From Fimbriosthenelais zetlandica (taxonomy: Eukaryota): DNA of 64,000 nucleotides. How positions within the stretch are numbered: the stretch's first letter is position 1; each line of letters opens with the position of its first letter. Position numbers and translations under genes: made by a program. The DNA lies in assembly GCA_977030845.1 (NCBI GenBank), contig OZ365111.1, positions 25,544,001 through 25,608,000 of the forward strand, given 5' to 3'. The notes beneath the pieces were generated by a model. It did no database searches and had not been told where the DNA came from. It saw nothing but the letters and a program-made list of their open reading frames with translations. Shown one piece after another: positions 38,384-56,795 of this stretch.

Positions 38384-41300
38384 TACTAATTTAATCGATT
38401 TTGAGATTTGAATGCGCCGGTGAAAACGTTTCAGTTTGGCATGAATTTATATTACACTCTCACACAGCAGATTCTTAAACAACAGGTATTACTGCGAAGT
38501 TCCTGCTCATTGCACCAACTTCATAATGATCGAATGGCTAAATGCTTGCATATAACCATGTATAGCTCTATAATACATCATGCAGGAGAAACGCACGCCT
38601 CCAGTGTGTGGCCAACTTAATGAATTAGCACAACCTTAACTCACGGCAGACTCCCACCCGATTTATTACCAACTTAACTCTATAGGTCAATACATCTCCC
38701 CAACCTTCATCAGATATTTCAAACTAAAAGTAGTGAAAGAATCACCCTTCGCTTTACAAAATCTCACACCCTACCGAAGTCCATCCCCGGAATTAATGAA
38801 GCAAAATTATTCCTATCGCCGAAAAAAAAGTGAAATTGAGTTATTGAGGAAGTACTTTACATTCACCTCAACTGTCTTCATTAAAATACCCATCATTTTC
38901 CTCCCTGACTCCTCTCTCGCCCATTTATTTGAGGACCTAATTCACAAATCTCAAACCAATTATAGCCGGCGACATGACTAACTTAAACCCCTGACTGGAA
39001 GTGCCGCTGTGGAAGGCAAAGTTGGATATTTAACAGTAGCAGAAAGGGCATCACAGTATTTGTCTCATTATCTTATTATAGCAGTACACGGATTAGCACT
39101 TACCGTTTCCCTCGCCGGCCATTTTCCCATCTGGTCCAGTTAGACACTGATTGCCAAGGTCAGGAGGCTGATGTCACAAGGTCAGCAGGGTCGGCAGTAG
39201 GTGACCTCGGTCCTGTACGTGTGGTGTGTTGACATTCTCACTCCACTTCTACTCATTATTATCTCCATTCAAACTGGCCACTGGCTAACAGTGGGCAGTA
39301 GTGTCAATAGATTCCTTACAAATCCCAGATTGGCAATGCTGCCAGGGAGGGATCGAAGAAAGTGGAATTCCCATGAATTTCCTTCACAATTTGCCTAGAA
39401 TAATCGGGATATGAGTTCATATTATATTTATGGCACTCTCTGATCACTGTTGCCTGAACCCAAAATAAACAATTAGCCTCGACCCAAGCTAGAGTCTATT
39501 TGTAACAGTAGCCTATTGGAATGGAACAACCATCAATTGAACAAATGGCTTGCAGAGATTATGTTTTGGATATGCTTCAGATAATTATGTGTACACACTG
39601 TTTTGGGTCTTGGCTCTTTCTGGCTCTTTCTGATCCTTCCACATTGTTCATCATAGCATCTGTACCTTACCCACCTCCTTATCTGGCCAGCCATCTCTGA
39701 GTACAAGGATAAGAGCCTGCACTCTGCCCTGTCAGTGTCAATTAACTCAGATGAGCTTAGATGGGCTGCAGGTGCATGATACGGTGGTCCAAAACGTCCT
39801 AGACAATAGATGAATAGGCGCCCTTTATACTGGGACGTCTAACCTCTCACGGTATATGTGTATTACTACGCGCTACTGTGCGGATGACACTAAATGACTC
39901 CGTGATTTGGTCATTTGAGAATTAGAATGACATTTGATGATAATATGAAATTGAAACTGAAAAAGGCGAAAAGATCTGAAACTATTGAGGGTTGAAGGAG
40001 AAAATAAGTGAACAATTTTACAATTTGAAATGTTTATTCGAAGATAATTTTGTAAAGAAGGAAAGATGAATTAAATGTTCTTATAATCTTCAGAACAACA
40101 AAAGAGAGTGGCGCTGCACTGGAGTAGGCCTACAGGCTTTAGGGTGGGGAGGTAAGGTATATAAGGTAGTCAGGTAAGAGGCACGTAGCATCATCCATCT
40201 CCTAATCCCGGCTCTCTACGTCCTCCCTCCACCACTCATTACTCACAATTACTCTCAACTTCCTTAATTAGGGACGATGGAGGCTAATTCACAGTGGCTA
40301 ACTCAATCCCTAGATATCCCCGTATTACATAGACCTTACCTACCCGAGTCTATTGGTTTACACAAAAGAACTCTAGCTTTCTATATATTTCCTGTCAAAT
40401 TGTAGAAAATGTCAGAAAATGCATGACATCTCGATGACTGCTGACAAACATAGTAAAAAGTTTCATTTTGGTAATATACATTACAACTGAAGTCTACAGG
40501 CATGCATTGCTGCATCGTGGGACTTAATCCACTGGTATATGCCCTAAACCTATTCTCCCAATCAAGTGGAGTTAGTTATGGCAAAAAATGCGAATTTTGG
40601 TACAAAATCTGGGGTATGAACATAGCTGGGAGTAATACTTTTCATTTTAGAAGGGTGCACATCTTGAAATATGAAAACTTGCCATGGCAACCGTTTTAAT
40701 TCTGATTTTGGGGTATTTTAGCTCAAAATAATTTTGCTCATTGAACCATCAATATCAAGATCAATTGCCTTTTTGCTTTTATGGAAAAGGAAAATTAGCA
40801 ATAATAAGTCTATGGCTAATATTTGTGTTGAAACAGGTCCAGGTCGCATGATGGGTCGCAGGCAATACTGGGATAGACAGCCTTGCTTTAGGAAGGTGGG
40901 ATCTTTTCGTAGAAACATTCCCCCGTGTAATGGTGGGCCGTATAGCCCTGATCATGAGCCTACTTTCCCCCAGATCCCAATCAATCCCTGCCCCGCACCC
41001 AACATCTATACGATCTTAAGTCGCGACAGATTGCCATGTCGATCACAGATCCCTTCTCTTGACCGGTCACAACTTTAAAACTTTGATCGCATCTAAGACC
41101 AACTTTTTCCACCCGGCCACTGTTATTGGATACACAATTACATCCATACCTCGTTCGACCGGCCTATTATGTCCCTAAAATCGGTAAAAGACCACCGTCG
41201 ATATCGTTGTTTGACATCTTACGCGATCGTCGCTCGGACACGGGGAATCTTTGTTCCACAATCAAGAAGCATTGAACACCCGTGTTTTAAGACTGGATGT

Positions 41301-44116
41301 CAATATTTACCCGAGCGACCCAGACCCATCACGTAATAGAAACAAGGGCCACAGATCATGCCTGAGAAAAAGAAACATGGCTGGCAGGACGCATGCCCGG
41401 GCGCCGTGTTTCCGGTTCCTGTTCTCTCATCACAGAGGTGGGGCTGTGTTTGCTGATGGTCTTTGTTGGAGAAGTGGACAAAGGAAGGAGGGTGGGAAAG
41501 GAGTGGGGTGTTTTAAAGGTACAGGCGTTTATGAAGGGATTAAAGCATGATCTAACCTAGCACAGGAGGTGCAATATTATGGTTCTATAAATTGATATGA
41601 AATATATAGCCATTCCGCCCCAGAGGGATCCCTACGTCCTTCCGCGAATACAAAAATGTCCCTGAAAGAACAGAAATACTTAGTGTTTGTTTTTCATTTG
41701 TCTTCCTTTTTCTTTTTCCTCTCGCTTATTTTAATACAGCGAGGAAAAAGTACCCTGTGTTTCTTCACATGAATCTATTAAAGGACTCCCATGGGGATTT
41801 TCCTGGAAAATCTTATCCTTTTGGGGAAATTGAAATTTGGAAGATATATATATCAATGTCTTCGAATTATAGTATGTGTATATATGGCGCAGAGTTCAAT
41901 TGTATCCACGAGTGGGACTGCTGGGGGCCAATGAAAGTGTTAGAGTGCATGGATTGAACAGGCAGGTGTTAAGGAAATATTGGATATCAAGTTACAAATA
42001 TGTGTTAATATGAAGACTGTCGGGGGGTAACCTGAGCCTGTTCAAGCATCTGTAAGCTCTCAGGTCGGCTGTGATCTTGTCAACTGCTTTCACACGTTTC
42101 GGCTTCTCTCATCTGATGGTGCGGGGGCGGGGATCATGTCGAGGGCTGGAGCTGGGACCGGAGTGCAATTTGCCTTGCAGAGGCAGTTCGACTCACATAT
42201 TTCAGTCCACATTTATACGTTTTCTATTACATTTTAGCTTCATATGCATATTGAACCTTATAGTACATGGCAAATTCTGCAAGGCCTCTATAAATAGGTG
42301 CGTTTCTTTTACATAAAATGAACGAAGGAAGAAAATAATTGTGTAAAATATGACTTATCATAGGTTATTATGATACAGAACATCGATTGCAATGGTATAA
42401 ACGAGGGATGCTTATACATACTTTTAGTGAAGAGAATAATTTTGTAAAACCATGACATGAAATATGATACAGAACATCGATAGCAATTTGAATAACAGAA
42501 GTCGAGGAAGTTAATAACGGTACCAAAGTTTATTCTTGTCACAGGACAATGACACAAGGAGTGAATGATACGTGTAGGGGTAAGACCGTATGCTTCCACA
42601 ATAAATAACATTGAATAACAGCAGGGAGAAGGTTATGAGAACACTGAAATACACCAATCATGGCTGCCGTAATCACCCCCATACCCTCCTAGTGTAGTAA
42701 TTCGTTACAAATCATACTCTCTCTAAAGCGACCGTTCCAGAATACGGTTACCATAAACTCAGTCAAATGTGACCGTATTGGAGAGTGCCAATAGGACTAA
42801 ACCTTCCATCTGTTTTTGGAAAAAAATTGTTTTAATTTATATCTTGATTGTATTTATTACATTGCCTATGAAGATGAATTCATTAAAGCGACCATCCCGT
42901 TGTACGACCAGAATAAGGAAAGTCCCTAATGTGGTCGCATTGCTGGGAGTCCACTGTATGCAGTGGCACTCTCCAAACGTCCCTTATTTTTGGAAGAATT
43001 GTTTTGATTTTTAACTTGATTTCAACTATGGATTTATTACATAGGTTATCAAGATGAAATCTGATCACACATACATACCTCAAGACAAACATCACAGAAA
43101 ATTAATTTGAAATGAATGATAACTCACGGACATGGGGGAACTGTTACGATTTCTAAAAAAATATATTGCAAAGCCAGTAATATGCCCTGACCAATAACTC
43201 CTCTTCTGCAATAAGTTTTAAATTTTACAATTTAAATATGCAAAAATAATCACTTAATATTTTAATGTTAGAATAAATGGTGGGAATTTCTAATGGCATT
43301 AATTTTCAATAAAACATACAGTTTACCTCACATGGGATTTTCACCACATATACTATACACATATATTCTTAAGCTGACATTCATTGCAATTTTTATCATA
43401 CAAATTCACCTACAGAAACAGAAATACATCACTAAGATGTGATTCTATTTGATATCACAGTCATTAATTCCCTTATAAATTAAGTGGAAATAAATCTTAA
43501 CCAATTATGACACATGAATCTTATCTACCGTCTACTATTAAATAATGTACTTATAAACAATGCTACCAATGACCAACGGCTCTCCTACCGTAAAGCCTAT
43601 TTGGTAAGTGGAAACTCAAACAAACTAACTCACAGACCCTTACGGTAATGATAATGATTTTATAATGACAACGACTTATCGTTTCAGACTGTATTATATT
43701 ACATCTAGGACCCTTTTCATAAGGATTTCAAAACTGTCCAACATTAGCTGCACTACAATAGTTCATTTCCCATACAGTTTATGTACCTTATCTAATCAGG
43801 GGTGGATCCAAGGGGCGACCGTACAATTTCCTCCCTTTTTCGCCCAATTTAAATATTTCTTGGGCCACCACCCTCGTCTCCCAGGCTGACCTCCATCCCA
43901 ACCGCCTTACACAATCCCAGATCCCCCCTCGTATCTTAAAGGGATAGAAAATCTGACCAGTACCTGCGCCATCTTTCCACATGTCCTTATGAGAAGGGCC
44001 CATGTTCTTGACTAATAACCTGAACCCACTGAGCTACGATCTCCCTACAATCTGCTTTAATACGAGCCAATTACAACAAACTATCATGGACATAGAGGTG
44101 GTAACGGAATGTAATA

Positions 44117-44331
44117 CAGGCGCGGATTTAGGGGCGGCGCCCCCCCCCCCCCTATTTTTTTTAGGGTTAACTTAACCCTAACCCTAGGTTTTAGCGCTAG
44201 GGTTAACCCAAACCCTAGGTTTTAGCGCTAGGGTTAACCCTAACCCTAGGTTTTAAGCCCAACCCTAGGGTTAGTCCCTAGCGTTAGGGTTCCCGCCCCC
44301 CCCCCCCCGAAAAATCCTGGATCCGCCCCTG
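44117..44331. mobile_element. MITE with GGATCC-type TIRs and internal telomere-like (TTAGGG/CCCTAA) palindromic repeats
   Basis: caggcgcggattta / cctggatccgcccctg termini, TAATA on both flanks, poly-C sub-termini, three ~38-bp tagggttaaccctaaccctaggtttt units. Confidence 0.8.
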
Positions 44332-44477
44332 TAATATGTAGAATGACATGTCCCTTACCTGTTCGTTACCACCCCTAACGTGATATATGTATATGAATCT
44401 TAAAATTCACCATGCAGTACGATCGTAGACTGGAGGCAATAAGATCGTAAGCTGTGGGTTCAGGACATAAAGTACTT

Positions 44478-44815
44478 TCAGACGGCCATCAGCTCCTCTG
44501 TATCCAGCCCCACCACGTCTATCGGCTCCTCACTTATCTTCTCATGTACATTCATGTTAATATCAAGCTGGCCTCGTCCTGAGAACATGGGATCACGTGA
44601 CAGGTCCATCATCATGTGACTATGAGCACTTCCGGTGGCGGCTGGTGGTGGTGGTGGCGCTGCTGTAGGTGGCGCGGCGGCGGCGGTGGTGGTGGTTGTG
44701 GCGGACTGTGGGCTGGCGCTGCAGCAGGTGTAGCTGGCCACGTGTCTGTCGCGTGATGAGGGGTTGGCGAATCTCTGACCACATCTGTCACAGGAGAAGG
44801 GTTGAGTGGTGTCAC
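44478..44815 (-). CDS. PRDM14: PRDM14 putative alternative terminal exon (extra C2HC finger, Thr/Ala/Pro tract, EEPIDVV tail)
   Basis: Acceptor ...caccgctag|GT at 44816-18; phase 1 matches the donor at 46105; 338 nt open to stop: GDTTQPFSCDRCGQRFANPSSRDRHVASYTC...EEPIDVVGLDTEELMAV*. Confidence 0.72.
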
Positions 44816-44942
44816 CTAGCGGTGGTTTGAGAGATAACAAGCAGAGATAGCTCTACTGGTACTGTCACCAACCACTATATCCCAGATAACCTACCTACAG
44901 TTACCTAGACGACTCACATAATCAATGCTCCCTGTTTCAAAA

Positions 44943-45142
44943 CGAATATTAGCCATAGACTTAGCATTGCTATCATTCCTTTTGAAACAGGTCTCTGGTG
45001 TTGTACAATGACCTGGGGCTTGTTTCATAACAATTGCTTTAGCGTATGGTACTGAAACAGGACCATGAATTTGGCAATCTCGCCGTAGAAATCTCGTCAA
45101 GAAAGAACGAATATTAGCCATAGACTTAGCATTGCTATCATT
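44943..45142. repeat. 36-bp direct repeats bracketing a tttcataa-type MITE fragment
   Basis: acgaatattagccatagacttagcattgctatcatt at about 44943 and 45107. Confidence 0.75.
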
Positions 45143-46094
45143 ATTATCATATTTTTTATCATTATTTGGCGTATCAGGTCATTGCAGAACAATGTTTAAC
45201 CTATGGATGTGACCCATTTGTCTGTCAGTGTCAGACATGTTGCCCCCATTGGTACTCACGCACACCTTCAGCGCTGAAATTCCATTGCAGAATTTAGGGT
45301 CTCATGGTATGTAAGAGCACCAAGAGTGTGTGTCGTAGGTGGCAATGTCTGTTGTCCAATTTGAGCTTCGATTTGGCCGAAAATGGTATTGCTTTTGAAC
45401 TAAATATGACAGACTGAATAGTCCAGGAAGCATTCATTATAGCTGAATCGTAAGTAACTGTAAGTTGACCTGTTAGATAATTCCCAAGATGCATGAACAC
45501 AATTGTAAGTGATCTTACTTTTTCATATATCGAAAAGCATGAAAAATATGCACAAACCAATGCATTGGCATTGGATCGTACATTGCTTATAATTATAAAA
45601 CGCCCATTGGGGCCTTTTGGAACAAAACAGTTTCGTTTCAAAATGGTCTTTTGGCGGGTATTTTCAAATGTGTTCATGATCGATATTCTGTTAGTTGCAA
45701 TAAGCTTCTCTTGTGCTTTTATGCAAAATGAGATCCTACCACCAGTCGTTAGGTTAAGTTAGTAATTAACTAAAGACCCAGAAATACTACATAAATCCCC
45801 AAGTACTGTTTTCTTGAGAAAAAAGTGCTTGGACAATAGCTTGTCATTGCATTGCCCAACCACTGTTTTTCTCAAAAATATTGCTTGTACAATACAATCG
45901 CTCGACGAGGGTACCCTCGCCAATGACGATTTACTTGTACAACACCCTATATAGCTGTAAGCGATCTGTGACTGTAGGACAGTATGGGACTGATTTATAC
46001 ATTATGCTAAAATTGATCTAAATTATGATCTATCTTCTTATAATTATGATGATCTTTTATTAGTGAAAAGATGAGTAAACTATAACCAGGAATG

Positions 46095-46259
46095 TTAGCA
46101 CCTACCATTGTGCATGTTCATGTGGAACTTGAGTTCGTAGGCCTGAGAGAATGTTTTCCCACACACGCTACAAACGCACGGTTTGTCTTTGGTGTGTGTT
46201 CGCCGGACATGGCTGTCGTGGGCTGCATGGGATGCAAACGCCTTCCCACAGTGGCGACA
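46095..46259 (-). CDS. PRDM14: PRDM14 exon encoding ZF5-ZF6 (ends at 46106 if spliced on; TAA at 46097-46095 if terminal)
   Basis: tttatttacag acceptor; CRHCGKAFASHAAHDSHVRRTHTKDKPCVCSVCGKTFSQAYELKFHMNMHN; FASHAAHDSHVRR is diagnostic of PRDM14. Confidence 0.96.
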   Translation of the reverse strand, partial: CRHCGKAFASHAAHDSHVRRTHTKDKPCVCSVCGKTFSQAYELKFHMNMHNGRC

Positions 46260-49200
46260 CTGTAAATAAAAAACATCAAAAATACACATTAAAGTTTGTC
46301 TAATTCATGAGCGATTTAGAGGAAATGACCTTCAACTAGTTCGGGTCCCCAAGAACGGGTCCCGAGACCTACCCCCAAGATTGCCCTTTTGCATTCCTTG
46401 ATGAGGATGGAAATCTTTCAGGATAGGGGGAGTTTTTATAAAGGAAGATTAAATAGGTAACTTTCGCAAGTCAGATTGAAATCCAAACACCTTGCATCAT
46501 TGCTGCTGAGGGACATTTCTGCTTGAAATTTCAAAGATGTCATTTTCCACAGGAGCGCATAAATTCGAACTTGAAGCGTCTCTGAATGCTGCAATATTGA
46601 CGAGTACTATATAGTATCTGACAAGTGTGGTATCTTTTAGTTGTCAGTCTGAATAATTGCCAACATACAAGCACATCCACAGGCTTTATTTCATAACGAG
46701 AATATGCTGCATATATATGCTTTATGTAGACTGATCTTTATTATGCAACAATCCCCTGCTTTCTCTGCCCTTGATGACCTAACCATAGAAAAATGGGATA
46801 TTGGAACTGAGTGCAACAGACTGTAAAGTCAAATTTTAACTTTTGCCGGCATCAATTTATCAGAATCTAAGTATTGATCAGTCGATGAAGCAGATTTTTG
46901 CTCTCATTTCCCCTGATCGTGAGTTCCTCCGGGCAGCGGACCCTGATAAAAATGTCGTCTGTGTGCAGGTTTTTGGCGCCATGTTTACATCGAGAGGTTG
47001 TGTACACCTTTATGATAGGAACTGCCCAAGTTTGCTTTCACGCGCCTGATGGAACAGGCGACTGCACCTACCAGCCACAGTCAATAAAACAAATATCCAT
47101 TTCACTGAGTTTGGATAGGGATGTATCCACTCTGCACCGGTTCACTTCTCGGGGCTGTCGCCCAGCCAAACTTCGCCTCCTTTCAACGCGCGTTTTGAAT
47201 AATGTCCTCCGGAATCAACAAATCCAATATGGCGGCCATACTGTGTACTCATCCGCGCGATCGTTAGGCACTGTTTGGTTGGACCCGGCGTCTTTTAGTT
47301 CCCTTAAACTCGGTTTTCATTGAAGGGAAGGATGGAAAGTAAACGAGGTTGGTCGGGCGCATTCATACATGCTAGGGAGCACCTATCACGCCGGCACTAT
47401 TTGCATGGGCCGCGCATTGATAACGCACGCACTGACATTGAGGCGTCAATGGGCTGGATCAATCCGCGATCACATAGAGTGCCGCCCTGGGGACTAGAGA
47501 TTTTATATAGTGAAGCAATATGTCGAAAAATACCGGCCAACACTTGAAAAGTCAGCAAGTGCAAAACTATTGAAAGCATGGGTAAGAACTCTATAAAAGG
47601 TTAGGAGGGGGGATCTGGTGGATTTGTGGTTGGCACGACTATCTTGTAGCTATTTGGTACGATTTTATCCTAGGTAAACAGTGTTTCGGTTATAGAAAGG
47701 CAAGAGGGGGTGATAAAAGTGGCATTCTGGGGAAATGTGGGTGCCGAAAGCTGCAAATTATGCCATCTTTTAACACTTATATCAAAACTAAATGTGTCCA
47801 AAACAGTTATCTGGGTAATCAGACTTGATTTGTAACTGACAGGGAAACATTTTGTACTTTAATTCAAGATCATTGTTCACTAATCGTTAGCTTAACAAGT
47901 TTTTCGATTTCAGTGATCGATAACATTCATATTTTCCTTTTATGGAACGCGCATCTTTTCCATATGAAGAATTTAGTACTCAATCTGCCTCAAAATACAT
48001 AACAACTCTAGTGCAGATGGAGAGTCTAAGTAGATAATGCATTAATAGATAAAGAATATGGATATTTTGTCTCCCATTTTGACAGACTGTGCCCCAGTAT
48101 AGACCTGCACGACCCCAGGGACAAAGCCCAGTGTTGCCACCTTGAATTTACACTAGTCATCCGCGCCAACACAAAACACCAATATGTTGACTGAGTGCCT
48201 GAAATATTTTTGTCATTATGTTTGCATGGCACATGCAAAAAAGGTCAGATGTGGCTCATAATATATATAAAGTATTAACCACGGTGGAAAGGTGGTTCAG
48301 GTGGGGGAGGAGGTGCATGACAAAGTATGTGCAAGGTCACTCCTGAAAAGTACAATCAAAATATTGTCCCTGTCTAAGCTGAACTGAGAACTCATTTTTG
48401 TTTTTTTTTCAGAATTCGAATACTGTCTCGATTTGATAAATTTTGAACCTCAATTCTGTAAAACAAGGAAATTTCTAGTCTCATAATGTGCACAGTGTAC
48501 ATGCAATCGAGTTTTAAATGACGATCACTAAAGCACAATGCGTCCACTAAATTATCAAAACTATTCAAATGATCCATTCCGATATACGACCACAATTCCA
48601 AGTGTTGGTCGCATTCGGGATTCCAGTGTAAACTTGAGACACATCCACCCCTTCAATCTGAGGAAACATGTTTTCCCCTGTACTTGAAGGGACCAAAAAA
48701 CAAGCTCAACAAAGCCAGATTGTGTAAGAGCACTTCGTTCTATGACATTGTTGATCATAGTCCTTGAAAACCTGCGAAATTCAAAACCACCGGTAGCGAA
48801 AATATTGATATTTCTTTGTCCCGCTCCGTGATGCAATAACACCTTCTCAGCCCACTAGAAACTGTATATCTTTGAGGTGTTTTATAGTATAACCGGGTAA
48901 AAATTATGTCATAGAAGCAGCTATTATTATGAGCACGTTATAGCACAGCTGTACTAATATGGTTCAATACAGAGAAGGTGATAGTAGTCACACTGTATAG
49001 GGTGGAGAGAGAGGTGCATTTGATACCCTTGCCCGACTGTAACCTAACTCCCATCCCTACAACACCCTCCAAATACAGAGTTCAAAGGTCATCAAAGAAA
49101 CCCGATGATCAGCACACAAATAATATCTTAACCTTCACCCTTTTTCCCAACAAAGGGCAAAACAATGTAACCCTTTCTGTGTTTGCCCATTGGGGTGTTT

Positions 49201-49629: not shown

Positions 49630-49986
<357 letters not shown>

Positions 49987-50247
49987 TCAAACGATGGATG
50001 GCATGCTGTCCAGGAGTAGGCTGGACGGCGACAGGGTAGTGTCGCCGCTTAAGCCATTATTTTATTAGATCTGAACGGTGTCAGACTGTTGAAAATCTGG
50101 GATTTGTAAAAGTGTGTCGTACAGTTCACAGAAACCATTTTCTGAAGCAATACATTTATCTCATCTGTTTGCAAAAGGTAGAATAGGAGATTGTGCTAAG
50201 TTAATGGCTGGTTTCAGATTATTTTTTAGAATTTTTGGAGGACTCAC

Positions 50248-50374
50248 CCGCATGTGTTTGTTGAGAGAGGAGCTTTGGGAGAAAGACTTTCCACACACGG
50301 TACATTTGTGGGGTCTGTGTTTCTCGTGTACGTGTAGAATATGTATCCGTAATCTGTCTCTCTTCTCAAAAGAT
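50248..50374 (-). CDS. PRDM14: PRDM14 exon (ZF2 end, ZF3)
   Basis: 127 nt, AG/GTGAGT; [43 protein letters not shown]. Confidence 0.97.
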
Positions 50375-50727
50375 CTGAAAAATTGTTAAATGAAAAAAAA
50401 CCCATTTAATTGTTGCATTAGAACATTTAATTGTTACCTTATAAAAATATCCAAGCTTCGTTCGTTACAAAAGAAAGACCATAGATTAAACTTGGCCAAT
50501 ATCTTTTTAAATGTGGTCCTATCTGTTTCCCTTACTAGAAAACCAGGCGTTGTTTCATAACAGAAAATGCACTGCATGCCAATGGTAGGAGGCAGTCCAG
50601 TACGCCTATGTCTATGACTCTTTGGTTTCTCTTGAAGCAACTGTAGGCAATTGGAACAACTAGGCAATTGGAACAACTAAGCAATTGAAACAATTATAAG
50701 TAATGAATGACTATATGAAAAGCTCAC

Positions 50728-50857
50728 CTGGTACATAGATGACATGGAAATTTCCTATCACCTTGATCCACACATCGCGTGTATTTAAGATGTTTGTCTC
50801 TGTAATATCTATAAGCGAACACCTTGCCACACCTCTCACACTGGTAACCCTCGCTGT
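50728..50857 (-). CDS. PRDM14: PRDM14 exon (ZF1, ZF2 start)
   Basis: 130 nt, AG/GTGAG; SEGYQCERCGKVFAYRYYRDKHLKYTRCVDQGDRKFPCHLCT. Confidence 0.97.
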
Positions 50858-51085
50858 CTGAAAACATGGACGAAATCATAAAATAGTTAGTCATAAAACA
50901 GATCTACAGTCGAAGACCCCCAAAAAAGATAAAATTGTCATATAAAAGGTGATAATTGTACTACAAACTACTTCAGCTGCAAAACACCACTGAGAAAAGC
51001 TGGGAGATCAAATTGAGAGGAGAATGTGTTACAAATCAATATGAAACAAAATATGAAAAATGGATTTGAATATACCAACTCTTAC

Positions 51086-51191
51086 TCTCGACTTCCTCCG
51101 TCTGCATGCCGTCTGCCATCTCCTTCAGAGCGACTGGGATTCCCATAAACTGTAGGTAGCAATCCCCATACCACACCAACAACTCGGTACC
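51086..51191 (-). CDS. PRDM14: PRDM14 exon (PR domain C-terminus)
   Basis: 106 nt, AG/GTAAG; GTELLVWYGDCYLQFMGIPVALKEMADGMQTEEVE contains the PR-domain ELLVWYG motif. Confidence 0.96.
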
Positions 51192-51725
51192 CTGAAAGAA
51201 TAGAGTCCGTGAATTTCATAATTAGCTGGGAACATACAGTGCGACCACCTCCATAAACCGACCACCCCCTAAACAAACCTGTAAAACGACCATGATTGTC
51301 TGCGTCCAATTTCCCTTCCTAAATGTATATTTAATGTACCCCTAAAGCGACTATCTTCTTATAGAGACAATTAACTTTTGGTCAGTCCCAATCACGGTCG
51401 AGGAGTGCTCTATCAATACATGTATGATATTGATACAATATGATCATTGTATCGATGCCCTACCTGACTAATACGAGGGCTAAAATTGCATTGCATAAAA
51501 CCTGGTCCTCGCGTTAACTTTTTATTGTGGGAAATGTGATCGCACCATCTTGGTCCATGAACATTTTTTGTGATTTTTCAGCAGGATCGAACCATGAATG
51601 TAATCATGCAAGAGGTGGCAAGGGCTCGAGAAATAACAAATCTTCATAGCCTATACGTGTATAAGGATTGTGTAATGATCTCAATGGGGTGCGGGGTGCA
51701 TGGCGCATCAAGCTAATGGACGTAC

Positions 51726-51887
51726 CTGAGGGATATCTTTGCAGGCCTCATAGTAGATTTCTCCGTCTGTTTGTACAGCCAGGAGGTTCTGCTCCTGGGC
51801 GTACCTCGCACAGTTAACATAGGCCATCCAGTTACCAGCACTACCACGACCATCTATAAAATGTGCCAACTTCCCATCCTGGAAAAT
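51726..51887 (-). CDS. PRDM14: PRDM14 exon (PR/SET core)
   Basis: 162 nt, phase 0-0; IFQDGKLAHFIDGRGSAGNWMAYVNCARYAQEQNLLAVQTDGEIYYEACKDIPQ (NWMxYVNCAR..EQNL motif). Confidence 0.97.
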
Positions 51888-52190
51888 CTGAAAAAATGAC
51901 ATTAAAATAAAATTTAAAACATTAATTTAATGATTATTAAACCTAAATAAAAGACCTAACTGATAGAATCAAACTTATAGATGACTCATAGATTCCAGGG
52001 CTAATCTTTCAAGTGATGAAAATAATGACCAAAATCACTCAAAATCCACCCAAAGGAGCATATTTTTCTCTCACAAGATGGAACAGGATGCTTTCACTTT
52101 CTACCAAAGTCTTTTGGTAGGGATTTGCAAGTTGTAACCTTAAACAAACAGATCACCATTGTAGCCTCGCTCTGGATCCAACCGCCACTG

Positions 52191-52223
52191 ATCATGTGAC
52201 TTCCTGGGTCACGTGACCGGAAG
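52191..52223. promoter_or_regulatory. Composite E-box/ETS element in PRDM14 intron
   Basis: CATGTGACTTCC followed by GTCACGTGACCGGAAG; YY1-like gccgccattttg ~200 bp away. Confidence 0.35.
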
Positions 52224-53314
52224 CCAAGTTCAAAGTGAGGCTGGGTGTATTCTCAGACGCTAGATTAGGACGTCGATTGGCAATTACAGGCGATTGAGGG
52301 CCAGTACTAAATTCATTTCACCCCGTGCTTACCGACTTAGGTCTACGATGGGCCTTAATTACTATCATGCTCCCAAATACCTCCCCAGCCCCTTTGACAG
52401 GAGTCAGCCGTCGATTTAATGCCGCCATTTTGGTTGCTGACAGTGGCTGTGACACGCGGTTCAGAGTTGATTAAACACCGCTCGGAGCGTGAGCGGAATT
52501 GAGCGAGACTTAGCGGGTGATTTGATGAGGGGAGGATTGTGTGAGGGAGAGAATAGGAGAGAATGTAACACTGATGGGGGACTTAATACAAGACGGGACA
52601 TGGGGATTGAAAACCAGAGGACCCCAGACTCACATACAACGCCTTCCTTAGTTCACTATTGCTTCTGTTACCCGTCAATGCCGTCTTATAGGATCAGTAC
52701 TGGATTTAGTAGCTGTCAAATACTATTGTCATTCCTTTGGTTGAAGAATGAAGAAGATCTAAGTCAATTGCCTTGTCAGTGTTGGTCTTATATTAGTGGA
52801 GGTAGACTGAGTTGGAGAGGGTTGTTTGTATTAAAGTTTTGAATGGATCTGATTGAATAAAGACCAGTTATGTCGGGATTACACCTTTACCAGGGTCTGT
52901 GTCCACTGATAACTCAATCTATGCTGCTCCAACGGCCCGATTTAACCGAAATTTCGTTTTAAGCGTGTTCGTTATAGGCGGACTCCACTGTATTAATGTA
53001 CCCACTTTTGACTGAAATTTCCTTTCAGCAAATACAAATTCTTCTATAGTCACTGAGTTTGGCCCCCAATTTCACCGACCTCCCTATGACCCAAGGTTCC
53101 ATTTCTCAATAGACAGACTGACAGTTGGTTATGAAACTGACAACAGAATGATGGCGTAACTCTGTTAAGAAACAAGCCCAAAATTCAAATCCAAATTCAT
53201 AGGGCCAGTTTCAGGGATGAAGTGCTCTAACCAACTCCCCTCCCTTATGCAACACATCCTTGTTATGAATCGAATCCTCTGCCCCTATTGAATATGAAAC
53301 ACTCAGTTACTCAC

Positions 53315-53475
53315 CTCCCACATAAAGCTGTTGTCGTCATTGGTTTTGATTTCGCTCGTGTTGACTTGTTTCCCTCTAAAAGGTCCAAATAATGAACCTT
53401 TCGCTATGACTGTCTTCTTACAGAAAACGCCATAATGTACAGCGCCGGCGAAGGTGGTCTGAAACAGTTCAATAC
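53315..53475 (-). CDS. PRDM14: PRDM14 exon (PR domain N-terminus)
   Basis: 161 nt, AG/GTGAGT; GIELFQTTFAGAVHYGVFCKKTVIAKGSLFGPFRGKQVNTSEIKTNDDNSFMWE. Confidence 0.96.
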
Positions 53476-54129
53476 CTGAAACAAAGGTGGAAATGTCAGG
53501 TAAGTTTCAGCAACTAAAACCATCTTCCCTCTAAAATCTTTTGAATTTACTTCCAGAGGTCATTTTAAATTAAATTTACTGAAATAGACACAATGTCACC
53601 CATCCTCTCAGCTGGATAATTTGATATCTAAGGCGTGCCACTTGTAAAATTTACTTTAATTTAATTTTCTAACTGGTTGGGTTGAGGAGGTGGCCCTTAA
53701 GGCAAAGGCAGTATATCGAATATAAAATGTCTTAACAGGGGGTAAGGCTTAAAGACATGTTTAATCTGCGAAGAGAAAATTTCAGATTTACATATTCACA
53801 CAAATGTTGGCGAACTTTATAAGGAAATGAATGAAAATTCGGTTGAAGCGGAGTGGGACGGAAACCAAGTCATTGTATGATTGAATTATTAGCGTCACAC
53901 ACCCTAAACCCACCTCCCTGTACCTCCCCTAACTAGCTCTACTCACACCCCCCCCCCCCCCACCCCTCACTTTGTCCATCAATACTTCATACTACCTGTC
54001 GCCTTAGGCCAGTCAGGTAGCCCCCCACCACACACACACACACCCACCCTCCACCCCCACCAAAACCATTCAAATCTCTCTCACACCTAATATTCACCTC
54101 CTCTGCATAATCCCCTCCAGCGTTCCACC

Positions 54130-54177
54130 TCAAGGTCAACCCCCAGGGTCAAGGTCAAGTACCAAGGTCAAAGGTCA
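54130..54177. promoter_or_regulatory. Nuclear-receptor half-site cluster (five RGGTCA)
   Basis: tcaaggtca, gggtcaaggtca (DR0) and aaggtcaaaggtca (DR1) within 48 bp. Confidence 0.45.
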
Positions 54178-54230
54178 GCTGGGATGACCACTGATAAATT
54201 ATGGGGTAGAGGTAGTAGTGGTCAAGATTC

Positions 54231-54426
54231 TAAAGCCTGGTCTCCACTGCTGCGATTTTTCTTGCGACAAAGGAGATGCTTACAAGTGTAGGAATAAAAT
54301 TTCTAGATTGTGGTCCATCTGTCTAAGGCCTTAAGCCTTAATGGTAAATTTGTCATTGAAACACAAGCATCACCTTTGTCGCAGAGGTGTCGCAAGCAAA
54401 ATCGCAGCAGTGGAGACCTGGCTTAA
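54231..54426. mobile_element. MITE family B, complete copy
   Basis: taaagcctggtctccactgctgcgattttt / gcaaaatcgcagcagtggagacctggcttaa TIRs. Confidence 0.85.
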
Positions 54427-56047
54427 CCCGTGTGGACCTGCATGCCTGGTGGTCAATCGGTCAGGGAGCCTGAGGGCTAGTGGTGAGGGCCTGGTGAGAG
54501 TTGGTGGTCACATAAGGGCCATAAGGGCATCAAAGTGGCTCCCGTACAGGGAGAGGGTCTGCATGCGCCATATGCTCGACTGGTAAGGGGTCTTTGTATG
54601 AGTGGGAAATGGTGGATTGGTTAGTGGCTGGGGCGCGGGGGGAGGGCGGCTGGAGGGTCGACGAGAAAGGGTCGGGGGAGGCGAGGATGCATGGTTTCAT
54701 CAGGCAATTCCTGGATTTCTATAGACAGCAGTTTCTGGACATTTCCTAACTCTAAAAAGAAGTTCTACAAATTTCCTTTTTTCCTACAGGCAGAGGTTCT
54801 ATTTATCACCCAATTGCTTGATTTCGAAGAAGGATTTTTTGGAATTTTCAGCATTTTGTATTTGGGCTTTCATGCAAAGTCTGAGTAAGTAGTATAGGGA
54901 AATGTGAATTATACTATGGTTAATGCACTGGGCCCATTAACTGATTTTATAACCAGAATATTGTACAAAATACTCGGAAAAAGACTGAAACACACACTTT
55001 TATCATTCAAAGTTCAGCGAGAGTGTAAAATTGGGTGAGTTTTTTTTTACTAGAATCAGTATGTCGTTATAATTTCATGTGAGTAGTATAAGAGAAAATC
55101 GCATATACTCGGGCTCCCAACTGACCGCAAATTTATTTTTGAAACCTGAGCAGTTGTGGACATAAAACATTTACAGATGAATTTATGTAAGAATTGGAAG
55201 GTGAATAGGAATGCTTAGGATATTTAGACCTATCTGAAGGTAGATTTAAATGCTAATTATTTGTGGTGGGGGGGGGGCATCTGATCAAAAATACTGACTA
55301 AAATGTGGATACTAATTCGCTCGTGGTTGTGAGAGATTTAAGGAAGAGATTCATGAGGGCAGGAGAAGTAAGAGAAGGACAGAAGTAGAATATTTAGGAC
55401 GGAGACATTTATCACAGGACTTGGTCCCTAGGGCCGCTCTGAGACCGATACGCGCCTGACACCCTCCCGGCACTCCTCACACCTCAGGCGGCTTTACCAC
55501 CTCGACCCGCAGGCGGCCTCTTTTCTACTGTCCGACAGGTTTGTTTAGACTGATAACAGACCGATGTGAACTTCATCTTTCCGATTAGATGGGGATTTTA
55601 ATTAATGCCTCGGGTTGTTCTCTTCTAAATAGGCCTATCGGCCTGACTGAATAGCCACCTTATAATCTTTAGAAGGGGTCCACATTTAAGAGGACTTCAT
55701 ACCATAATTATTTTAAGGGACTTTGTTGTGATTGGTCTTATCAAAGATATTCACAGAGATAGATAATGTAGATTCCAAGATCAGCATTAAATTTATAAAA
55801 GAAATTCCCATTTTTTTTCTTCAATTTCTGTCTAATGCCCAGTCATACAAATCAGCGAGGATTCGAGGATGATACTTTGGTTAAGCCAAGCTGTGTACGC
55901 CTAAAAGTACTGAATGCAATTGCTTTCTAAGTATTCTTTTCTGACAGTACCCAGGACGGCAGGGGTCAAGCCATCACCTCGTTTTCTGCCCGTGTAATAA
56001 TCAGTCGGGGATTTAGTAAATAAACCCGCTAGGAGGCGTGACCAGAC

Positions 56048-56092
56048 CACGTGATATATCACGTGTCATACCCCACACCCCTGTCACGTGAC
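56048..56092. promoter_or_regulatory. Triple CACGTG E-box cluster
   Basis: CACGTG at 56048, 56060 and GTCACGTGAC at 56083. Confidence 0.35.
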
Positions 56093-56680
56093 CCTGCCTC
56101 TTCCCATTTAGAGGGCCGGGCAGGTTGGTAACGCTGACCTTCCCGTCTCCTTAACATTGACGGATGGACTAAAATAAACTTGTAATTGGAGAAAACCAAA
56201 GATGAATACGTTTTAATGTCTCAGCAGCAGGGGTACGCTACTAATGGGGCTCTCCCAACAACGAATTTAAGCCAGTATTACCCCGGGTTGTCATCCCTGA
56301 CAAGTATAGATCCATCCATACCCAAACTGAATCTGATTATAAATATTCTATCAAGACGGATCCATGATTTTCTAAAGGGGGCCAAACAAGCGTGGAAGAA
56401 GATATTAGGTTGTCTAAGCGACAAAAATTGCTCCAGTAAGGGGAGGGGTCCAGTCCCTCTGACCCCCCAACCCCCCCCCCCCCCCACGCCCCCCCCCCCC
56501 CCCCCCCTTCCTCTCCCAAACCAATCTACCCCTGTCTATAGACTTGGGGAGATTTTTACAAAATATTTTTTTTAATTATATCACATTAGCTCATAGATTC
56601 TGGCTGTTTTAATTGCTCTCCACTCGTGGTGATCAGCACTCGTGAAGTCACTCGAGCTAGCCTAAGGATACAGTACTTAC

Positions 56681-56795
56681 CCTCTGGAAGGTCGAGCGTG
56701 CTGGGGTCGATGGGGCCGGACGCTGAACCCGACTTGAGCGATGGGTGGAGGCTGGTAGATCCGTTACCAAGGATACGGTCAATACCTGAAAACAT
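56681..56795 (-). CDS. PRDM14: Most 5' PRDM14 exon found (starts at ATG 56795 or, more likely, at acceptor 56785)
   Basis: ...SASGPIDPSTLDLPEG|GTAAGT aligns with the LxLPEG start of the PRDM14 PR domain; ttttcag acceptor at 56786-88 is phase 1. Confidence 0.88.

Follow-up and report, generated by a model that had tools for sequence, protein, structure and literature searches.

The window analysed here (64,000 nucleotides of contig OZ365111.1 from Fimbriosthenelais zetlandica) carries on its minus strand a PRDM14 gene, whose nine mapped exons run from 56785 to 44478 and join by splicing into a single open reading frame. Seven coding exons were mapped within 49780–56785, with the start codon lying further upstream, and these are the most 5' exon (56785–56681), three exons for the PR domain (53475–53315, 51887–51726, and 51191–51086), and those for finger 1 with the first part of finger 2 (50857–50728), the rest of finger 2 with finger 3 (50374–50248), and finger 4 (49890–49780). 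Fingers 5 and 6 are encoded at 46259–46106, and a terminal coding exon with a seventh finger follows at 44815–44478. Fingers 1 and 7 share the C2HC spacing, while fingers 2 to 6 are of the C2H2 type. A search of the PDB with the PR exons gave as the best hit the PRDM14 chain 5ecj (2e-22 and 2e-14), with PRDM1 in second place (8e-10) and with PRDM9, PRDM12, and PRDM4 weaker, and the domain matches the Pfam family PRDM2_PR (2.5e-22). Moreover, tblastn searches with PRDM14 from Platynereis, Paralvinella, Owenia, and Lineus showed that fingers 1 to 6 are colinear with those of these named proteins, at 69–100% identity per exon (86–100% for the exons of fingers 1 to 4, and 69–78% for the finger 5–6 exon). 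Overall similarity is greatest to annelid and nemertean PRDM14, with 75–84% identity in the PR exon, which by itself would place the animal among the spiralians and probably the annelids. PRDM4 as an identity for the finger array was ruled out by the PR-domain comparison (1.5e-05 for PRDM4 versus 2e-22 for PRDM14). The PR exons and the colinear fingers thus bear out the original prediction that the gene is PRDM14, and we regard it as a true orthologue. PRDM14 has already been recorded in lophotrochozoans (PMC4760075).

The terminal exon measures 338 nt, including the TGA at 44480–44478, occurs as a single copy in the assembly (447 Mb, 79 contigs), and contributes a glycine plus 111 residues, which are arranged as a finger, a low-complexity run, and a conserved acidic tail. 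The seventh finger (44724–44798, minus strand; FSCDRCGQRFANPSSRDRHVASYTC) follows the pattern C-x2-C-x12-H-x5-C, with four ligands that do not vary among the 15 sequences compared, which cover six phyla. The ensuing run of Thr, Ala, and Pro (44637–44723) is species-specific. At the C-terminal end, the acidic motif EEPIDVVGLD (44502–44531) has the general form [DE][DE]xIDV[VE]. One may speculate that the acidic tail serves as a SUMO-interaction motif and that the sequence MDLS serves as a CtBP-binding motif. When the last exon was compared by phmmer with 1.8 billion representatives, mostly poly-zinc-finger proteins matching finger 7 were returned, and the sole specific match was a tail fragment from a related species (P0012), which led to two genomic contigs of that one species (L001 and L002). 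Two PR-containing matches (P0006 and P0113) were considered as PRDM14 and rejected as PRDM9-like. A word-indexed search with the 111 residues, in which a length limit applied, gave P0012 alone. With the same exon, the protein atlas yielded generic zinc-finger clusters only, and the metagenome scan gave no matches.

Between the window and the contigs of the relative, only the last two exons, a stretch of about 40 nt leading up to the acceptor, and blocks at the 3' side can be aligned; synonymous sites are saturated (pS 0.56–0.78; dS at least 1), and the intron is unalignable. Across this distance the terminal exon keeps its frame and lacks only the Thr/Ala/Pro run in L001, and its dN/dS of 0.15 overall (0.16 in the finger and 0.06 in the tail) indicates that it is under purifying selection. 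Since the exon is selected in this manner and encodes two old modules, it would not be an optional extra.

The exon for fingers 5 and 6 (CRHCGK...HMNMHN and the first base of a glycine codon) ends in phase 1 as CAATG|GTAGGT; the GT of the donor occupies 46105–46104 on the minus strand. This donor is strong and conserved, as the 5' splice site GTAGGT (46100–46105) can pair with U1 at 6–7 of 9 positions, and both contigs of the relative have the identical site. The exon itself is 84% identical to L001 in nucleotides and 98% in amino acids, with one residue in 51 differing (pN 0.012, pS 0.78). An intron at the same position after finger 6 is found in Capitella, Paralvinella, Lineus, Saccoglossus, Ptychodera, Branchiostoma floridae, and a metagenome locus (L012). 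In the window, this last intron spans 44816–46105 (1290 nt) and closes with a pyrimidine-rich tract ending in CTAG, and the branch-point, polypyrimidine, and acceptor region (44816–44857) still aligns with L001 1423–1461 despite the saturated synonymous sites. The intron also harbors a 61-nt hairpin at 44931–44991 (26-nt arms, 85% complementary; RNA fold of -27.6 kcal/mol, z -3.5), overlapped by a 37-nt exact direct repeat with copies at 44941–44977 and 45106–45142. Neither is conserved in the relative, and so they probably represent a small repeat element. A scan of 40800–46500 with Rfam returned sub-threshold hits only, these being mir-305 (24.8 bits against 66) and engA.

Beyond the stop codon, a conserved 3' block (42507–42609, minus strand) is 70% identical to L001 2624–2715 and retains an AATAAA at 42534–42529. 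By this conservation, the hexamer is probably the true poly(A) signal of the gene, and the 3' UTR would then be about 1.95 kb long. A second short conserved block is present in this presumed 3' UTR at 43428–43490. Further out, 2.9–3.4 kb beyond the PRDM14 stop, a 517-nt block at 41068–41566 on the minus strand is 68% identical to L001 3049–3556, even though neutral sequence is scrambled at this distance. Stops in every frame in both species mark it as a conserved non-coding element, which may be a promoter or enhancer or may give rise to a non-coding RNA.

If the donor after finger 6 were left unused, read-through would add G-R-C and meet an in-frame TAA at 46097–46095, and an AATAAA hexamer, a candidate intronic poly(A) signal but an unsupported one, lies 44 nt past the donor at 46061–46056. 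The original prediction was accurate on the donor, on the ending HNGRC with its TAA, on the hexamer, and on the in-phase joining of the donor to the 338-nt exon at 44815. It also held that such a read-through product would end where vertebrate PRDM14 ends, and this agrees with tetrapod proteins, which end 2–7, mostly 3, residues past finger 6. Here, the layout of stop and hexamer is no rarer than chance. In the window, the frequency of AATAAA is about 0.9 per kb on each strand; a random minus-strand position has it within 60 nt in 5.6% of cases (11% for A[AT]TAAA within 60 nt), and random frames meet a stop within 3 codons in 20%. Read-through at the eight donors of this PRDM14 gene would add 31, 3, 5, 16, 1, 28, 50, and 3 residues, which places a stop within 3 codons at three donors (the finger-6 donor among them) and within 5 codons at four, and A[AT]TAAA is found within 200 nt of the donor in five of the eight introns. 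Moreover, the comparison of sequences indicates that neither the stop nor the hexamer is kept in the relative, in which read-through reads GRFRIKI before its stop and no A[AT]TAAA is met until 410 nt past the donor. The last intron showed no similarity to L001 past donor position +6, and from +7 to +150 the comparison gave -13, as against -12.2 +/- 5.6 for shuffled sequence. Vertebrate work on the U1 snRNP has established that poly(A) signals are suppressed when a strong 5' splice site lies shortly before them.

To follow the seventh finger across animals, we collected orthologues using one cnidarian-type open frame (L004) and a Capitella protein (P0207) as the queries. A metagenome scan with the finger 5–6 exon retrieved cnidarian-type loci (L004–L011), in which one open frame covers all seven fingers; these loci are intronless, and their upstream PR domain is again closest to PRDM14. 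The brittle-star-like locus L012 shows a phase-1 intron at the same place and then a finger-7 exon. In 15 aligned orthologues, the C, C, H, and C ligands of finger 7 are unchanged, and the finger bears the signature RD-H. It was found in the cnidarians Nematostella, Actinia, and Desmophyllum, in the hemichordates Saccoglossus, Ptychodera, and Glandiceps, in two Branchiostoma species, in the echinoderms Asterias, Patiria, Acanthaster, Amphiura, and two sea urchins, in the nemertean Tubulanus, and in one paralogue of the brachiopod Lingula, and was not found in vertebrates, molluscs, or the other annelids sampled. Mollusc PRDM14 mostly ends 3 residues past finger 6. In all species tested, finger 7 gives a partial match to Pfam zf-C2H2 below the cut-off (positions 1–20 of 23, 16–18 bits versus 25.2), and its last ligand is a Cys at +6 instead of a His. 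Such a partial match fits a C2HC variant of the predicted finger. The [DE][DE]xIDV[VE] motif, for its part, recurs near the C-terminus in the annelids Platynereis, Capitella, Paralvinella, Ridgeia, and Owenia, and in Lineus, Tubulanus, both Lingula paralogues, and three hemichordates. Judged from these distributions, ancestral PRDM14 had a seventh C2HC finger, and that of the bilaterian ancestor had an acidic IDV-type C-terminal motif, with the six-finger PRDM14 of vertebrates and molluscs then representing a derived state. Vertebrate PRDM14 is described as a six-finger protein (PMC4463580), and in the PRDM14 literature searched we found no description of finger 7 or of the tail motif.

Several further PRDM14 proteins came to light in these searches. 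In fishes (P0297, P0313, P0329, and P0196, from a coelacanth, a zebrafish relative, a catshark, and a notothenioid), a tail of 47–71 residues extends past finger 6 and ends in YRPWN; it is absent from tetrapods and unrelated to the tail in the window. Peptides such as WRPW and WRPY at the C-terminus recruit Groucho/TLE, and the fish YRPWN resembles them. A 645-residue entry for Acipenser sinensis flagged UNVERIFIED_CONTAM (P0269) was the second-best match to Capitella PRDM14, and its tail is fish-like. Metagenome contigs Ga0209780 and Ga0209363 (L013 and L014) hold a divergent PRDM14-like gene in which an insertion rich in Thr, Ala, and Val separates finger 5 from a degenerate finger 6, and no finger 7 was found in the 7.7 kb downstream.

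Short PRDM14 isoforms that correspond to read-through of the intron after finger 6 are annotated in two other species. In NCBI, isoforms X4 and X5 of Ptychodera flava (XP_070533249/50) end in HTG and isoform X2 of Lineus longissimus (XP_064637436) ends in HTGE, 2–3 residues past finger 6, and long forms are annotated as well. All of these are automatic models, and such models often reflect unspliced pre-mRNA. At the genomic loci, the short forms prove to be read-through of the phase-1 intron: in Ptychodera as GGT TAG TAG, where the 693-nt intron carries an AATAAA 138 nt from its start, and in Lineus as GGT GAG TAA, in a 413-nt intron without a hexamer, which implies intron retention rather than intronic polyadenylation. 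In fact, A[AT]TAAA is missing from the intron after finger 6 in five of six other species (Lineus, Saccoglossus, B. floridae, Capitella, and Paralvinella), and polyadenylation inside this intron thus cannot be a conserved mechanism. Read-through stops no more than 4 residues past the last His of finger 6 in seven of nine species, which are not independent of one another, and early stops in 6–7 of the nine are only borderline because the baseline within the gene is about 3/8. The donor after finger 6 in Ptychodera (L029, ~38684) and Saccoglossus (L032, ~19165) has the unusual form G|GTTAGT. Both hemichordates retain GTTAGTAGGTA at the donor, with two in-frame TAG codons right after the exon; the donor region GGTTAGTAGGTA is kept together with these two stops, and nothing is kept beyond 15 nt. 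Given the read-through models of Ptychodera and Lineus, a minor short transcript is plausible in the species of the window. Moreover, a retained last intron has no exon junction downstream and should therefore escape nonsense-mediated decay and be translated, so that even noise-level retention could give some six-finger protein.

Taken together, the long form stands as the canonical PRDM14 product, which is conserved, and we consider it probable that it is made essentially constitutively. The coordinates, the frame, the purifying selection, and the deep conservation of this form are all established by the comparisons above, and it is from the conservation that we infer a constitutive use of 44815–44478 as the terminal coding exon. 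The strong donor past finger 6 would splice to 44815 across an ancient phase-1 intron, yielding a seven-finger protein that ends with the conserved acidic IDVV motif, and the message would most likely end at the conserved AATAAA in the 3' block. The intronic TAA and AATAAA would be by-products of AT-rich intron sequence, and with presumably low use of the intronic site there would be at most a minor six-finger product from unspliced or prematurely ended transcripts. The original prediction had cast the 338-nt exon as an extra, alternative end; instead, it is a conserved, selected, and ancestral terminal exon, with modules recurring in other invertebrate PRDM14 and with a dN/dS of 0.15. Its proposal of intronic polyadenylation has found nothing specific in its favor, as the stop and hexamer are unconserved and the start of the intron behaves like shuffled sequence.

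A regulated choice of ends could still be envisaged, in which a functional six-finger isoform, missing both finger 7 and the acidic tail, is made alongside the seven-finger one, either because the last intron is retained or through cleavage at the AATAAA of 46061, and in which the ratio of the two is controlled. The close spacing of stop (3 codons) and hexamer (44 nt) after the donor, the short isoforms that this intron yields in the Ptychodera and Lineus annotations, the early stops in most of the nine species, and the paired in-frame stops of the hemichordates all speak for it, and a six-finger PRDM14 is evidently functional in tetrapods and molluscs, where it is the only form. However, the hexamer and stop are lost in the closest relative, A[AT]TAAA is wanting in the intron of five other species, stops are as frequent within 3 codons at the other donors of the gene (3/8), the automatic models may be unspliced pre-mRNA, and the donor is strong, and on this balance we hold a functional, regulated short isoform to be rather unlikely. 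As for the broader proposal, that read-through of the post-finger-6 intron, whether as retention or as early 3'-end formation, is an old conserved route to six-finger PRDM14 lacking the seventh finger and acidic tail, that tetrapods and molluscs fixed the short form, and that the window preserves the ancestral two-isoform state, we look upon it as doubtful indeed. It seems highly improbable that the gene mainly yields the six-finger read-through form and that the downstream exon is a decaying, rarely spliced remnant, as the loss of the exon in tetrapods and molluscs and of finger 7 in other annelids is outweighed by an intact frame, by the low dN/dS (lowest in the tail) at a distance where neutral sequence is unalignable, and by the conserved acceptor region and 3' poly(A) block.

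With regard to known systems, truncation of transcription factors by intronic polyadenylation is a general mechanism that has been reviewed (PMC8904962, PMC10551640). The window shares with such genes the succession of donor, in-frame stop, and then intronic hexamer. Typical cases have weak donors, long introns, and conserved signals, whereas the PRDM14 gene of the window combines a strong donor with a 1.3-kb intron and an unconserved signal.

The PRDM14 of cnidarians and of invertebrate deuterostomes (for instance Ptychodera flava XP_070533245/6, Saccoglossus, Branchiostoma, and Nematostella) is likewise built of a PR domain and then seven fingers, of which finger 7 is C2HC with RD-H. In the intron-bearing bilaterian genes, as in the window, finger 7 lies on the last exon behind a phase-1 intron in a Gly codon, two residues past finger 6, and hemichordate PRDM14 also has an acidic EIDVE motif like that of the tail in the window. 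The window differs from deuterostome and cnidarian PRDM14 in its linker, which is NGDTTQPF instead of TGEKPY, in the inserted Thr/Ala/Pro run, and in a tail of the spiralian IDVVG type. Among annelids and nemerteans, the C-terminal motif is the same, reading EEPIDVVGLDTEELMAV in the window, GEPIDVVGSDELLMV in Lineus, and ETVDVVGLE in Platynereis (A0A0D6E1Q3). Finger 7 is missing from the PRDM14 of Platynereis, Capitella, Paralvinella, and Owenia and from Lineus X1, but is kept in the species of the window and in its relative. The gene is an ordinary PRDM14 orthologue, and a gene model at this locus should contain the terminal exon.

Compared with vertebrate PRDM14, the PR domain and fingers 1 to 6 are colinear, and the hypothetical read-through product of the window would end 4 residues past finger 6. 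Vertebrate PRDM14 lacks finger 7, and past finger 6 there is no tail in tetrapods and an unrelated one in fishes. With finger 7 and the acidic motif absent from vertebrates, cofactor or DNA-binding properties of the mouse and human proteins may not hold for invertebrates. Were the short read-through form real and regulated across phyla, PRDM14 would illustrate how, in evolution, one isoform can turn into the only product of a gene.
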